A stretch of 64,000 nucleotides of DNA from Adineta vaga (taxonomy: Eukaryota > Animalia > Rotifera), in assembly GCA_021613535.1 (NCBI GenBank), contig CP075496.1, forward strand, positions 12,028,001-12,092,000, written 5' to 3'. This document shows, piece after piece, positions 208 through 36,063 of the stretch; within the stretch, counting starts at the first letter, position 1; each line of letters starts with the position of its first letter. The position numbers and the translations under genes were made by a program. The notes under the pieces were generated by a model that worked only from the letters and a program-made list of their open reading frames with translations, was not told where the DNA came from and made no database searches.

Positions 208-3200
208 TTATTTCACTGTTGTTCTTACGATAACATCGTCTAATAAATCATCTAAGCATAATCGAATATCACTTTCAGTCAAATCAGCAGTCGATGGACA
301 TGAACATCTACTCATTGGTTCTATAAGTGAAGATTCAAGAAACAAGTCAGGATCTTGACAGGCTTCTTGTAAGTTTTGTATATCATGTGTAACTTCCCTA
401 AAACAAATAAACATTTTAATAATGAAATTCTATCGAAATTATCCTTTACCATTGACTATCACATGATGAACATTCAAAACCGACTTTATATTTCCATTTT
501 GATGAACGACGAGCATGATTTTCAATGAGATTATGATGTAAATCTTTCATTTGATTTTCTAATAAACCAAGACAATCACGGATTGCACCGAGTGAACTAA
601 TATACGAACGAATATAAATTGAAGAAGAACTCAATTTTGTATATTTCACTTACTTTGTTACTTTTTCTTCTGCTTCTGTATCCGTGATTAATCGTTGTAT
701 TTCATCGATATCAATTATTGAATTCTATCAGAACAGAATCGATTAATTTTATGCAAAAAAAAAGTCAAATAAATTCCTTACTTGTTTGAATAAATGTTGA
801 TTATCAATTAATGGTCGAATCATTTTACAGAATTTACCCAATCGTGTTTCCAATTCTTTTCGTTTTTCTTGACTTTGTTGATCCAATTGTTCATAACGTT
901 GAACATTATCAAGTGAAAACTAAAAAGAAAATCAATGCATACTGTTTTCTCTTAACAATTCAATAAAAGAATTTAAAAATAAAAAAGAACAAGACAAGTT
1001 AATATGCAAAACGTGCAGATAGGCATTTTAAAAAACAAACAAACAAATAGATCATATTTTATTATATGTTAGGTTTTTTGTTCAATTTTACTAAAATCAA
1101 TCATATTAAAAACAGCATACAAGAAAGAAACACATAAATATATCACCGAATCAAACGAAGAATAGTTTAGATTTAGCTAATTGTCATAATGAAAATATAA
1201 ATAAAAAGAATAAGAGAGAGAGAGAGAGCCGTGAGTTTGTCTATTGTTCAAGCAATGTACGTGCATGAAGATTTTCATAAACATCCCATGTAAAGCACGG
1301 AATTGATGATATGTTAGTAAAATGTAGTAGTAGAGGAAGAAGAAGAAGAAGAAGAAGCATGATCATTGCAACTGTCCATTGAGCCTACCTGATTGGCTTT
1401 GATTGCTTCTTGTAATTCAAGTTGATGAGCTTTAGTTGTATAATCAAGTTTTTCTTTTAATGCATTTAATTCACGTTCCTTCAATTCAAGTAATTCACGA
1501 AGATTCTATAAAGAAAAAGATATTATTCATCTTTTTCTTCGAGAGAAAGCATTTCTTTTACATTAGTTGAACTATTATCTGTTCGGTTAGTCTCACGTTT
1601 GAGATCAACTATTTCACGTTCCAATTGTTGTATTCTCACTTGATCACATTGAAGATCTGCTTTAAGACGATCAACTTCCAAACGATATTGTGTTTCACTT
1701 ATACGTAATCTGAATAAGAAATTAACAGATATTTACTCCTTATTTCATCATCTCAATTTCATTACCTGTCTGTTTCAGCTTTAAGTATTGTGAACTCTTG
1801 ATTTTTAACATTCATTTCATGTTGAATATGTTTAAATTGAATTGTATATGTTTCTAATTGTTTCTTCAATTTTTGATTTTGTATACGAATACTCTTTAAC
1901 TAAATAAAATCACAACGACACATTTCTGTGCGAATAATATTCTTTAAATCAATCGAAATATCTTACTTTTCGTTCAGTATCCATCAATCTTTGTTTTATA
2001 TAGGGATCATTACTATCTATGATAAACGATGATGGTTCACTACCATCAAATGTTCTCTCTGCAACTTCATAAGTTAACCATTTTAATGTTAAATAACAAA
2101 TGTCTGTATCAGAAGATGCATTTTCATCAGTTGTTTTTACGGAAGAATAAGATAATAATGATAGATGTTGATTTTCTTGTTTAAGTCGTTCATTTTCTTG
2201 TGTATAATCATGTGTTAAACGTTCAAATTTTAATATAATTTCTTTGAGTTTTTTATTTTCGACTTGAATTTGTTTAACAAATTGTTTCAATTGTTCACTT
2301 TCTTTTGACCAAGCTAACATTTCTTGTTCAAATACTCGACGTGAAATACGTTGATCCGAAGGTGTTGATCTATTTCATTAAAACAAAAAAGAAATGCATG
2401 CATCTTTTTTTTGGGGGAAATCTATTTACGGTTGTTGCTCATTTTCTGTTTGAATTTCTACATGTTGTTTCAATGGTTGATGAGCTAATTGTTTGATTTG
2501 TTCCATAAGAGAAACTCGTTCACGAAGTAGAACATCAATTTGACATTGACAATCACTTAATCGAGTTTCAATCAAACTACTAATAAAAGAAAAATAAATG
2601 AATTGATTATTGTTTGTTTTGTATTTGAGAAAGAAGGAAAAAGAAAAAAGAAATATACTTTTCATTATTAAAATCAGTTTGTGATTCGATTTCATTTGAT
2701 GATTTAGTTGTAAATTGCTCTCTAGCTACGTTTTGTTCTTCAATTAAACGATCAATTTCTCGTTGATAAGTCAATCCATTCTCATAAAGTCGTTCTCTTA
2801 ATCCATCGATTTCTTTCTGATGTTCTTCAATCATTGATAAACTAAACAACAAAATATTTCAATAATTACGAATAAATTCTGAAAATCTTGTACCTCAATG
2901 TTTGATTATGATTGATATTGGAATTCATATCTTCTGCAGTCATTGAACGAACATTTTCAGTATTTAGTTGACGTGTATCAAATGAACTAAAAAGACAACG
3001 AAACGAAGGAGTTCAACATTCTTTTCTTATCTAGCTTTTTCTTCTTATCGTTCACTCGTCATAAGTATAAATGATAATAAGGATTACATCATTCTATAAG
3101 TTACCTTTGCAAATCATTGATTTCTTTCTGGAAACTTTTTATAATAATTATAAGTTGATTCAAATCTTCGGCTATATCACCAGTTGATTGAGGAAAGAGA

Positions 3201-6200
3201 TGTGGATTTTCAGTCACAATTTGATGAAGATCATGTGCAATATGATGTATTAAACTATCAGTTGATGTCGGAGACATAGCAGATTGTTGAACGGCATGTT
3301 CATCTGTAGATAGTTGAATGATAGAATTTTGATCATCCCAATCATTTCCTGATGGTTCTTCTGATAGTGATGAAGCGATATTTCTTAGAGCACCAAATAA
3401 ACGACTAGTCACTGATGCTGGTCGATGTTCTGATGCATCGGATACGTCTTGAACAGATGGTGGTCTATCCAGAAGTAATTCACATTGAACTTCAACATCA
3501 TGAAAGTGAACTCGTTCATCAGCACAATGAATAGATTCTGTAGACCAATCATTCCAATGTTCTTCATTAGATGTTTGTTTTGAATGAATCTCTTGTGTAC
3601 GTTCACTATATTCCGATTGAGTCTTACGAGCAATGACTGTTGGAGATGAAACTGATTCTTGAGGTGTTATTTGACGATCATTTTCAGCCTGTTGTCGATA
3701 AAGTTCAAATGAATTTTCTAATTGTTGAACAACATGCTGTAAATGTTCTTCGGACTCATGAAGTTCAGTTTGTAATAAACCAATTTGTGTTGCTTGACTT
3801 TCGACGGTATGAATTAAATGATCAAGACGTTCATTTGTTTCCTCACCGATATTAATAAAAAGATCAGGTCGTTCAAGAGCAATTCGTTGAATTTTTTCTT
3901 TTATTGTTTGTAGAGCACGTTTTAATTTATTGTTTAGTTTAACAAGTTTCTCATTTTGATGATCACCGGTTTGTTTGTCATTATCAGTTGTTACAGGAGT
4001 TGATGAAGTATTCTTACGTTTCTCTTCTAAGAGAATTTCACGTTCACGAACAAGATTTTCAATTTGCTTCTCATAATTCATTAATTGTTGTTCTGTTTCT
4101 CGTCTGAAATAAATAATTGATTCATAATGAATCATATGTATCGAATATTTTTACCCTAATTTATCAAGTTCTGCTTGTAAATATATATTTGAATCTAATT
4201 GTGACAAGAGATTCATATATTTTTCACTAACATCTTGTCGTCTCTTGGTTTGTTGTTGAAGAACTTCTTTTCGTGTTGATGTACTATATGAATAGAACAT
4301 TCCATGTGAGTATGATAAGGCAAGTATACTTTGAACTTACTCAGTATTTGGATCGGTATAAATTTGTTGTTGTTTCAATGTAACTAATTCATTTTGCACT
4401 TTTACCATTTCAAGTTGGCTAAAATAATCATTTTTCAAAATATTTTTTCAGAATAATAGATAAAATTTTTACTTTTCTTCACATTGAACTTCATGTTGTT
4501 TAATTAATCCATCTCTTTCTTGCATAAGCGATTGTATTTGTTGTTCATAGATGGACAATGTTGATGCACATTCATCTAATGTTTTTCGAAATTCACGTTC
4601 AACATCAGTTAATCGATTGCGTATGAGAGTTCGTTCATCTTCATTCGCAGAAAGTTTCTCACGAAGATGATTGATTTGTTGTTGTTGTTGATGTTGCTGC
4701 TGGTGTTGTTCACTTTCGAAAACAGATGAACTACAATATTGAAATGATCACGAGATAATATTAATGATAGAATGAAATCATTTTTCAAACCTAATATATG
4801 TTGAAATTTCAGATGGAGAAGTATCGGTCATTTGCTCTTCTATTTTATCCGATGGATGATTAGTTGCAATTTGATGTTGAAATACTTCCAATGCACTAGC
4901 AGATAAAGAACACATGTTTTTTTTAAGATCGACTCGTTTTTGTTTTTTGCAATGTCTTTCATACTTTTGTAATTCTCGTATTTCATCACGAAATTGTTCT
5001 TGTGATTGATCAAGTTCCAGTTGTAATGAATTAATCTGTGATGTTTGATGATCAACAAAGGAAATCAAATGATCAAGACGATCATTCGTATCTTCACCAA
5101 TATTTGCAAATAATTCAGGTTTTTCAATTGCTACACGATGAACTTTATCTTTGATTGTTTGTAAAGCACGTTTCAATTTATGATTGACTTTTGAAAGTTT
5201 CTCATGATGTTGATCATTGGATCGTTTCTCATCATCGATTTGTGCTAATAAAATAGCATTCTTTTCGGCTTCATCTACAAGAATTGAACGTTCCTGAAGG
5301 AGATTTTCAATTTGACTTTGATAATCAGCTAATCGTTCGTCAGCTTCTTTCCTGTAATTGAAACAGAAGTTGATTAATAACTTCAATGAACAATTAATAC
5401 CAACTAATTACCTTTGTCTTTCAAATTCTTCACGTGATTCTATGAAGGCGGAAAGAGCCATGTAACGATCAGTAAGTTCTCGTAATTCCTTGGACTGTTG
5501 TTGAACAACATCTTCTAATGATTTTACACTGATAATAAAGAGAGAGAAAATGAATACACAAACGTTGTATTATTGATAAGTTACTTGGTATGAGAAGTAG
5601 AATCTTTACGGACTGTTGCTGGAGATTGTTTTAATTCGTCTTGTAAATGTGCAATCTCGTGTTGACTAAATAGAATATATTGAGAAAAGAAAACAATAGA
5701 AAAATCAATGAAAACTTTAGTTTTACCTTTCTGCTGCTCGAATTGCATGTAATTCAATAACTGCATTTCTTTCTTTTATCAGTGATTTTAATTGTTCTTC
5801 ATATTTAAAAATGGCTGATGTATGTTCATCAGATCTTGTTTTCAATTCGTGTTCAACTTCCGTCAAACGTTGACGGAGTTGATTTTGTTCATCTTCATTT
5901 GCTGTGAGTTTTTGTCGTAATCTTTTCATCTGTTTATGCTGATCTCTCGTAGGTGATGAACTAGAATAATTAATGATGTTTACATGAGATAGTTGTTTTT
6001 TTCGTCTACCTTGTAGTAGTTATATGGTCTATTGTTGGAGCTTCAAAAACGAGATGATCCGATACTATCGGTTCGTTAGAGTCTGCCTGATTTTGATATC
6101 TTTCCAATGAGCTATAGAATATACAGATAAAAGAAGCTTTGATCATAATTGTATGTCCTACTTTTGTAACTGTCGAATTCGTTCATCATAATGTTCTTCA

Positions 6201-25667: not shown

Positions 25668-26357
25668 TTTAATGTTTTCTCTTTACTTCATTTTAACAAA
25701 CAAATTTCGGTGTTTTTTTGTTATTGTTGTTGCTGTTGTTGTTATTGTTGCTTTCATCATTTTAAATGAGATGTTTTCTTTCAAGGTAAATTTGATAAGA
25801 AGCTTTAGAAGCGCTACTGTTAAATTTATCATTCACGCTGAGATATGGTGCTATAAATGTTGACTAATCGAATACTATTTTATTTCAATAAAATTTTCCT
25901 AGGAACTTTTAATAAATCTATAAATAATAGGTCAAGATAAAAAGCTTATCTTTCTTGGATTATATTATTTATAAAACGTTATTGTAGAAAAGAGAAAAGC
26001 AATTGTAATGAAGTTCGTCTGAAAATCTCTTGACTATTAAAACATTATCAAACATGGTCGTTTTTTTATTGTTTGATTGACGGAATCGTTGTTTCCATTT
26101 AGTATACATCATCATTCAAAATCGAAGTAAATACAAATGTTTGTTACGATCTATTAGGAAAGTTCCGTTTTGCTAGATTAATATTGATTCTAACAGATCT
26201 CTCATTGTCCAATAATATTCATAAATCTGCTTTCCATTCGAGTTTTTCTCGTCTCGTGTTTTGTATACCAAAGAGAAAAAAAGGACGTTCTCAATTAACT
26301 TTAATTTACTTTCATTCAATAATAATACAAAAAAAGAAAGTCATATACAAATAGTGA

Positions 26358-27315
26358 TCATTTCGAAACAAGTTTTAATGCCAATTGACATGCATCGATA
26401 TACTGTTGGATGTAATTATTAATCTGTTTTCGTTTATATTGCATGATGTATCGTGGATGTGAAACTTTAAGAATTTTTTCAAAAAAATGATATTGGTCGT
26501 TTAGTTTATTTAAGATTGAATAATTAAGTCCTTCACCAAGACAAATGGCAACTTTTTTCGAACAACCAAGATTAATTTGTTTATCAATATAATCCGGAAT
26601 GAAATATTCAAGTAAATGTTTCATAAAAACTTTATTATCATAATAATTCATATTGCGTCCATTATATTCCAAACCAAGTGGACATACAGCACCAATAAAA
26701 AACTTCTGGTAAAAATCTTTCATAGAATATTGTTCAAAGAAATAATCATAGATAAATTGTGCAGATAATTCAGGTTTTGAAGGAAAATTTGAATCAATAC
26801 CGCAAACATTTTTTAAACGTATCGGATCCGTGAATGGCACACCTATTAATAAACAGAAGAAACGAGCGAAGATTAGTACCCATGAACTTTGTGAAATCAT
26901 CAGAATTGTATAAATAATAAATGTAGACAATTAGGAAAAGTAATTTTCCGGAAGAGAAGAGAGGCTATCAATGTTTTTGTTATTGCAATTTCTTCTCACT
27001 ATATCTATTCATGTTTGTTGAATAATCACGATAGATATATCTATATGTTTTTTATATACCTGTAGTTCCACCCCCAAATCGACCTGGATTAATTCCAAGA
27101 ATAAGAATACGTGCGTGTGTATCGGAATAATACTTCGAATAAAATGTTTCAACACATTGCCATGTTTCAGAATTTTGAAATGGATATAACCATTTGATTT
27201 TCTTGTCGGGTAATTCGATATCAATAGGCGGTTCTAATTGTCTTAAATAAGCTAAAATACGTTTATCCATCGGTTCAGTATTGGATTGAAAATATTTTGA
27301 TTTCCTTTCCGTCAT
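26358..27315 (-). CDS. Uracil-DNA glycosylase superfamily protein of bacterial SMUG2/DUF4918 type (2 exons, 246 aa); probable horizontal acquisition
   Basis: Motifs FYSKYY, ILGINPGRFGGGTTG^VPFTD, ELSAQFIY, VCPLG, NYYD, CLGEG.N, HPRYIMQY. Phase-1 GT-AG intron 26843-27059; exons of 256 and 485 nt. Confidence 0.9.
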
Positions 27316-27675
27316 ATATCTTTATGTATGTGTGAAAAAAAAAGTAAGTTTCGTCTGTTTAGATGTCGCACATGTGCAAAAATTTTGTAAATTGAAAAGT
27401 TTTTCAAGTAGATAATTATCTATTTTGAATATTGAAAGAAATCAAGTGTGTTTTATAAGAAAATCAAGAGAGAATCATCGAAGATATTAACACGAATTTT
27501 ATTGGTGAAGTGTGAAAACAAAGGCAAAATGTAATGGGAAAGAGATTTTCTTTTCTTTTCCTCAAGTCAATTGTTTGATGAGTCATTGTTTCACCACTGT
27601 CAAAAGGAAAGAAGAAGCAAGCAGAAATATTATTAATAAAAAGAGAAGTCCTTTATTTTTCTAGATATTTATCAA

Positions 27676-36063
<8,388 letters not shown>

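Follow-up and report, generated by a model that had tools for sequence, protein, structure and literature searches.

The window analysed here, a stretch of 64,000 nucleotides from the bdelloid rotifer Adineta vaga, carries on its minus strand the gene for a DNA-repair glycosylase of bacterial ancestry, whose catalytic domain is preceded by a short N-terminal tail containing an S-x-Y-F motif. This tail is very probably a real, translated and selected linear motif that was gained after the transfer of the gene. Its sequence resembles the MLH1-interacting (MIP) box of eukaryotic repair proteins, and from comparisons of sequence we lean towards the S2 site of host MLH1 as its partner, in which case a MIP box would couple the foreign glycosylase to MutL-alpha. 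The motif is a new candidate within the known MIP class; what is unusual is its carrier, a horizontally acquired bacterial enzyme.

Both exons of the gene matched PF03167, the UDG superfamily (E 1e-5 for exon 2), and NCBIfam returned no family for exon 1 or exon 2. The window gene and the host MLH1 gene were searched exon by exon, and the full-length orthologues P0002 and P0010 stood in for the PDB comparison and for folding. Unnamed products of Rotaria and Adineta species and of many metagenomic contigs come closest (70-86% identity), followed by proteins named DUF4918 or 'uracil-DNA glycosylase family' from Bacteroidota and Chlorobi (41-52% identity, E 1e-46 to 1e-32). The nearest solved structures are 5h0j and 5h0k, with an E value of 4e-52 for 5h0j against P0002; we take 5h0j to be the Pedobacter heparinus SMUG2 entry, the chain itself being titled 'uncharacterized protein'. 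Across 50 rotifer and bacterial sequences the columns G-I-N-P-G-R...T-G-x-P-F-T-D-P and H-P-R-Y do not vary, and the window gene has both motifs too. Judged by its sequence, the window gene is a SMUG2/DUF4918-type glycosylase of the UDG superfamily, with its activity predicted. The bacterial DUF4918 proteins and SMUG2 of Pedobacter heparinus (Pang et al. 2017, as cited in PMC8307549) share their fold and catalytic motifs with the rotifer enzyme but, unlike the rotifer copies, have neither the intron nor the S-x-Y-F tail. When the exon-2 region was put through a quick maximum-likelihood analysis, the 17 rotifer copies came out as one clade (SH-aLRT 100), borne on a long stem and set among the 54 bacterial sequences of the tree. 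This single rotifer clade, taken with the intron position that the copies share, indicates one acquisition, with an intron gain that predates the split of the sampled rotifer lineages.

The features of the gene are collected in Table 1. Assembled contigs of four public runs from three studies skip exactly the intron, and these contigs are therefore RNA-derived and the glycosylase gene is expressed and spliced. Their 5' ends lie at 27441, 27437 and 27323; as they extend to 27441, the mRNA holds the first ATG (ATG1) and a leader of ~125 nt. Three database models (P0006, P0013 and P0014) read through the intron, which gives them an insert between G-T-T-G and V-P-F-T-D. Exon 1 of the glycosylase is single copy in the six-contig assembly (~100.8 Mb), and a search with this exon detected no second (ohnologous) copy there; several bdelloid mismatch-repair genes are reported to have ohnologous copies (PMC6264785).

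Table 1. Features of the glycosylase gene, its N-terminal tail and its leader, in coordinates of the window.
Feature	Position	Strand	Remarks
5' UTR, to the reach of RNA-derived contigs	27316..27441	-	4-codon upstream ORF (ATG at 27373)
Conserved word T-G-C-G-A-C-A-T-C-T-A-A	27370-27359	-	in the 5' UTR
Exon 1, coding part (85 codons + 1 nt)	27060..27315	-	ends G-I-N-P-G-R-F-G-G-G-T-T (UDG motif 1); splice joint in RNA-derived contigs
N-terminal extension, codons 1-15	27271..27315	-	from translation; present in 23 rotifer-type orthologues, absent from bacterial rows
K-S-K-Y-F, fitting the MIP-box consensus (R/K)-S-K-(Y/F)-F	27289..27303	-	S-x-Y-F core at 27300-27289
Intron, 217 nt, GT..AG, phase 1	26843..27059	-	same position in other rotifer copies
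Exon 2, coding part including stop codon	26358..26842	-	rest of UDG-superfamily domain, H-P-R-Y motif
3' UTR, to the reach of RNA-derived contigs	26291..26357	-	contig ends 26291, 26299

Translation of the minus strand (27315-27052) gives a 15-residue extension, M-T-E-R-K-S-K-Y-F-Q-S-N-T-E-P, followed by a second Met (M-D-K-R-I-L...), with ATG1 at 27315-27313 and the second Met (Met16) at 27270-27268. The initial annotation of this DNA had placed both the extension ahead of the second Met and the K-S-K-Y-F within it exactly where translation puts them. With the composition of the open frames in the window, the chance of finding the full pattern [RK]S[KRH][YF]F in 15 residues is ~7e-5, and that of finding the S-x-[YF]-F core is ~5e-3.

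Whether this extension is made as protein depends on the start codon that is used, and here the supposition of the initial annotation that translation begins at the first ATG has gained ground. The frame is closed by a TAA 9 nt ahead of ATG1, which is thus the most upstream start possible in the frame. In four orthologues (P0132, P0135, P0136 and P0137) the second Met is replaced by I or V, so that the upstream Met must start their proteins and the tail is translated. One could suppose instead that translation starts at the second Met and that the conservation upstream of it belongs to a regulatory RNA or DNA element, as the context of ATG1 is weak (T at -3), a small upstream ORF of four codons precedes it, and the database models P0007 (Rotaria socialis), P0129, P0133 and P0134 begin at the second Met. 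We consider this very improbable. The four orthologues which have no second Met exclude a second-Met-only reading for those lineages, ATG1 lies inside the mRNA with an in-frame stop just upstream, and the motif stands in frame just ahead of models that begin at the second Met: the upstream DNA reads M-E-I-K-S-K-Y-F... for P0007, M-A-E-K-K-S-R-Y-F... for P0134 and M-E-R-Q-S-R-Y-F... for P0133, such in-frame reading having recovered the motif at the loci L004 (Rotaria socialis, 1459-1500), L006 and L009. Furthermore, the frame is open and conservation is at the level of amino acids, with synonymous codon differences between species inside the motif itself (Ser TCA/TCG, Tyr TAT/TAC). Some leaky scanning to the second Met may nevertheless occur in Adineta vaga.

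The pattern of constraint within the translated tail is narrow. In an alignment of 23 rotifer-type N-termini (A1), for which column entropies were computed, S, Y and F are each present in 23/23 rows and are the sole invariant tail columns (entropy 0), the other tail columns having a mean entropy of 1.6 bits and the folded part one of 0.81 bits. The x position between Ser and Tyr is K in 19 rows, R in three and T in one, and the position before Ser is K in 17/23 and Q, T, E or I in 6/23. A motif conserved in the animal copies amid variable flanks had been foreseen as S-K-Y-F, and it is indeed found, with x as K, R or T. Its predicted absence from bacteria was likewise upheld: in none of 112 bacterial homologues is the domain preceded by an extension or a MIP match. 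In these 112 proteins the distance from the N-terminus to G-I-N-P-G is typically 57-60 residues, as against 72-77 in the rotifer copies; counted from the second Met, the rotifer copy has 58 residues, in agreement with the initial annotation, which had bacterial homologues starting near this position. The bacterial DUF4918 proteins start 2-6 residues ahead of the rotifer second-Met position. The tail is missing in one rotifer-type lineage (protein P0138; locus L008:1351-1560, contig logan:SRR24388909_74506), in which in-frame stops lie directly upstream of the Met, and P0014, which shares an N-terminal signature with P0138, has I-S-T-Y-F. These two proteins may mean that in one clade the motif was lost or came under weaker constraint.

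The MIP box has the consensus (R/K)-S-K-(Y/F)-F, with S-x-(Y/F)-F as its core (PMC13473659). Mutagenesis of the box followed by ITC found S, Y and F each to be essential and x to be free, the Ser forming an ST-turn, and in FAN1 the substitutions S>A, Y>A and F>A each abolish binding to the human MLH1 C-terminal domain (PMC13473659). On the side of MLH1, alanine mutants of M621, Y625 and F673 in the S2 pocket each abolish binding, and the pocket further uses E669 and D624, with a side-chain contact by T504 and a main-chain contact by N502 (PMC13473659). Known clients include yeast Exo1, Ntg2, Sgs1 and Rad5, the MIP box of Rad5 being residues 7-13 of an unstructured N-terminus (PMC9243396). The K-S-K-Y-F of the window gene fits the MIP sequence pattern of ELM (LIG_MLH1_MIPbox_1), and the orthologues conserve the binding-critical residues while the flanks drift. 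As S, Y and F are invariant and x is free, the constraint on the tail falls exactly on the residues that binding requires. An AlphaFold2 model of the orthologue P0010 (mean pLDDT 89.5) has no secondary structure over residues 1-14 and a mean pLDDT of 59 over the first ten residues, and helix 1 starts at residue 15, the second Met. The tail is thus predicted from this model to be an unstructured and accessible region, as are the regions that hold the boxes of Ntg2, FAN1 and Rad5.

Two of these clients invite closer comparison. Yeast Ntg2, whose MIP box occupies the Mlh1 S2 site in PDB 4FMN, is a base-excision glycosylase with a motif of the (R/K)-S-K-Y-F type in an unstructured N-terminal region, as is the case for the rotifer enzyme, and its critical residues S, Y and F match the invariant rotifer columns. 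Ntg2 is, however, a native eukaryotic member of the endonuclease-III family, whereas the rotifer enzyme, a member of the UDG superfamily, came from bacteria and would have gained its motif after transfer; and while binding to Mlh1 has been shown for Ntg2, the rotifer tail is a candidate MIP box. FAN1 (S-P-Y-F, 124-131), like Rad5 (7-13), has a motif of the S-x-Y-F or x-x-F-F kind in a disordered N-terminal part that docks on MLH1 S2 and is tolerant at x. FAN1 also binds site S3, through a further motif (MIM), whereas the 15 residues of the rotifer tail hold no evident L-x-x-x-L.

The host retains the corresponding site. The two C-terminal exons of MLH1 (G000:C2:1544519-1545269; best match of the exon query against protein representatives, 49% identity) were compared with human MLH1 chains, and human T504, M621, D624, Y625, E669 and F673 are identical in the host, which therefore keeps all S2 side-chain contact residues; N502, the main-chain contact, is replaced by K. 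A complex prediction gave a score of 0.00, which weighs neither for nor against binding given the atypical input, with the host MLH1 C-terminal domain split into two exon chains, the first 40 glycosylase residues, no alignments and controls not run. Against the MLH1 reading, the sequences show a position before Ser that is not always basic and one lineage that has no tail. The suggestion of the initial annotation that a foreign enzyme gained a host docking motif therefore stands as regards conservation, absence from bacteria, translation and an intact host S2 site, and we infer the binding to MLH1 and the wiring into repair.

The host EXO1 gene (L027; G000:C2:12699800-12705600, minus strand) was found via XPG_I; an XPG_N search returned FEN1 twice, XPG and a GEN1-like gene, with EXO1 not among its matches. 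The C-terminal exon of EXO1, which is long and low in complexity (open frame at locus 3112-3771), contains K-S-S-R-F-F, with an S-x-F-F core. One core match in 220 EXO1 residues has a chance of ~0.09, and this candidate native MIP box weakly suggests that the MIP/S2 system is in use in the host.

Short motifs built on aromatic residues are degenerate, and in several PIP-like classes a motif can bind more than one hub. It is conceivable that the tail docks another genome-maintenance hub, such as PCNA, the REV1 C-terminal domain, RPA, XRCC1 or a rotifer protein yet unknown, and glycosylases do commonly carry N-terminal hub-binding tails. Nuclear UNG2, with its N-terminal PIP box, is the precedent: there too a short aromatic motif at the very start of the protein links a uracil glycosylase to a hub of replication and repair, although its motif class and presumed hub differ from those considered here. 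The PIP, RIR and MIP motifs have moreover been treated as one related 'PIP-like' group arranged around two aromatics (ELM 2020, PMC7145657). The details of the tail nonetheless make this alternative unlikely. The PIP pattern is Q-x-x-[ILM]-x-x-[FY]-[FY], as also described by ELM (PMC7145657). In the 23 rows the tail does not fit it, the position three before the aromatic pair being K (17), Q, T, E or I with no conserved hydrophobic residue, and the Q not being conserved; canonical C-terminal PIP boxes are found in the same genome in FEN1 (L023 on C5, L024 on C2) and an XPG-like gene (L025), as Q-G-R-L-D-[TS]-F-F and Q-S-R-I-D-S-F-F. The RIR, which has two neighbouring Phe at its centre (PMC7145657), is rejected over the same 23 rows, the first aromatic being Tyr in 23/23. 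Finally, the invariant Ser two residues before the Tyr is the ST-turn residue specific to the MIP box.

A further possibility is that the tail works for the enzyme itself or in how the protein is handled, as a DNA contact or wedge, an autoinhibitory lid, a Ser phospho-switch or a signal for stability or localisation, and that its likeness to a MIP box is coincidental. Lys and aromatic residues could certainly contact DNA, the motif is just 4-5 residues long, and one lineage manages without it. Yet ~110 bacterial members of the family work without such a segment, the tail is modelled as standing free of the folded part, and it would be an unlikely coincidence, given the chances stated above for core and full pattern, for constraint to fall exactly on S, Y and F while x is left free. 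We regard such a role as rather improbable, and docking to MLH1 is the reading pursued below.

According to the mechanism we propose, a bdelloid ancestor would have acquired a SMUG2/DUF4918-type glycosylase once from a Bacteroidota-like bacterium, and the intron and a tail of ~15 residues, translated from the first ATG, would have been gained after the transfer. The Tyr-Phe pair and the Ser turn of this flexible tail would then insert into S2, the pocket on the C-terminal domain of host MLH1, in a manner analogous to yeast Ntg2, Exo1 and Rad5 and human FAN1, and the docking would recruit the deaminated-base glycosylase to, or coordinate it with, MutL-alpha at mismatches such as U:G. The published inventory of DNA-repair genes in Adineta vaga records MLH1, PMS2 and EXO1 as present and SMUG1, MBD4, MSH3 and MLH3 as absent, and neither the SMUG2-type gene nor its motif appears in it (PMC6264785). 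It is tempting, if still tentative, to postulate a hybrid route in which a foreign SMUG2-type glycosylase, plugged into MutL-alpha by a de novo MIP box, may take over from SMUG1 and MBD4, both recorded as absent, and distribute U:G or Hx:T lesions between the base-excision and mismatch-repair pathways as the animal recovers from desiccation; we would put the likelihood of this route at somewhat short of even. Our literature search found no mention of DUF4918, and no link between rotifers, MLH1 and a linear motif beyond the repair inventory (PMC6264785). The available portion of the supplements to PMC10809525, which concern a radiation-induced 'glycosylase', has no DUF4918 or SMUG entry.

How horizontally acquired genes join the networks of animals is largely unknown, the known steps being adaptation of promoter, introns and codons. 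The present gene adds a docking-type motif that all its bacterial relatives lack, that was gained soon after transfer and that many rotifer lineages have kept without change. Ligase E of Adineta vaga is likewise a horizontally acquired DNA-repair enzyme that bdelloids have kept and used (PMC10665377); no host docking motif is known to have been described for it, whereas the rotifer glycosylase would be integrated via a gained linear motif. If the tail does bind MLH1, it would show in a simple and testable way how the gain of a motif can wire a network, a UDG-superfamily enzyme would join the short list of MIP-box clients, and cross-talk between base-excision and mismatch repair would be indicated in animals with extreme tolerance of DNA damage. 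The hybrid route, if true, would offer a clear example from nature of how gaining a short linear motif can join a foreign enzyme to a host network.

The leader of the gene holds a conserved word as well (Table 1). In every orthologue locus examined (L004/L005, L006, L008 and L009/L010), the word (T)GCGACATCT(A/G)A is found 45-110 nt upstream of the glycosylase start, in DNA that is otherwise unalignable between these loci. It occurs once in the 64-kb window; over the whole genome GCGACATCT occurs 877 times, against 133 for a reversed control, and the 12-mer 13 times against one. We considered this word as the mark of a DNA-repair regulon and rejected that reading because it precedes unrelated genes, e.g. 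that of ribosomal protein S6, by 16-175 nt and has some 880 copies genome-wide. The word resembles a general element, of the leader or promoter-proximal, that bdelloids have conserved, and to our knowledge it has not been described in the literature.

Beyond the leader, TATAAAA is present at 27456-27450 on the minus strand, and a divergent neighbour gene lies at 27665-28169 on the plus strand, its start ~360 nt from the glycosylase ATG. Three short GT..AG introns are spliced from this neighbour (27711-27777, 27941-27993 and 28061-28115), and one of its exons holds a PDZ-like G-D-I-I-x-E-L-N-G stretch. The glycosylase and this neighbour may share one bidirectional promoter.
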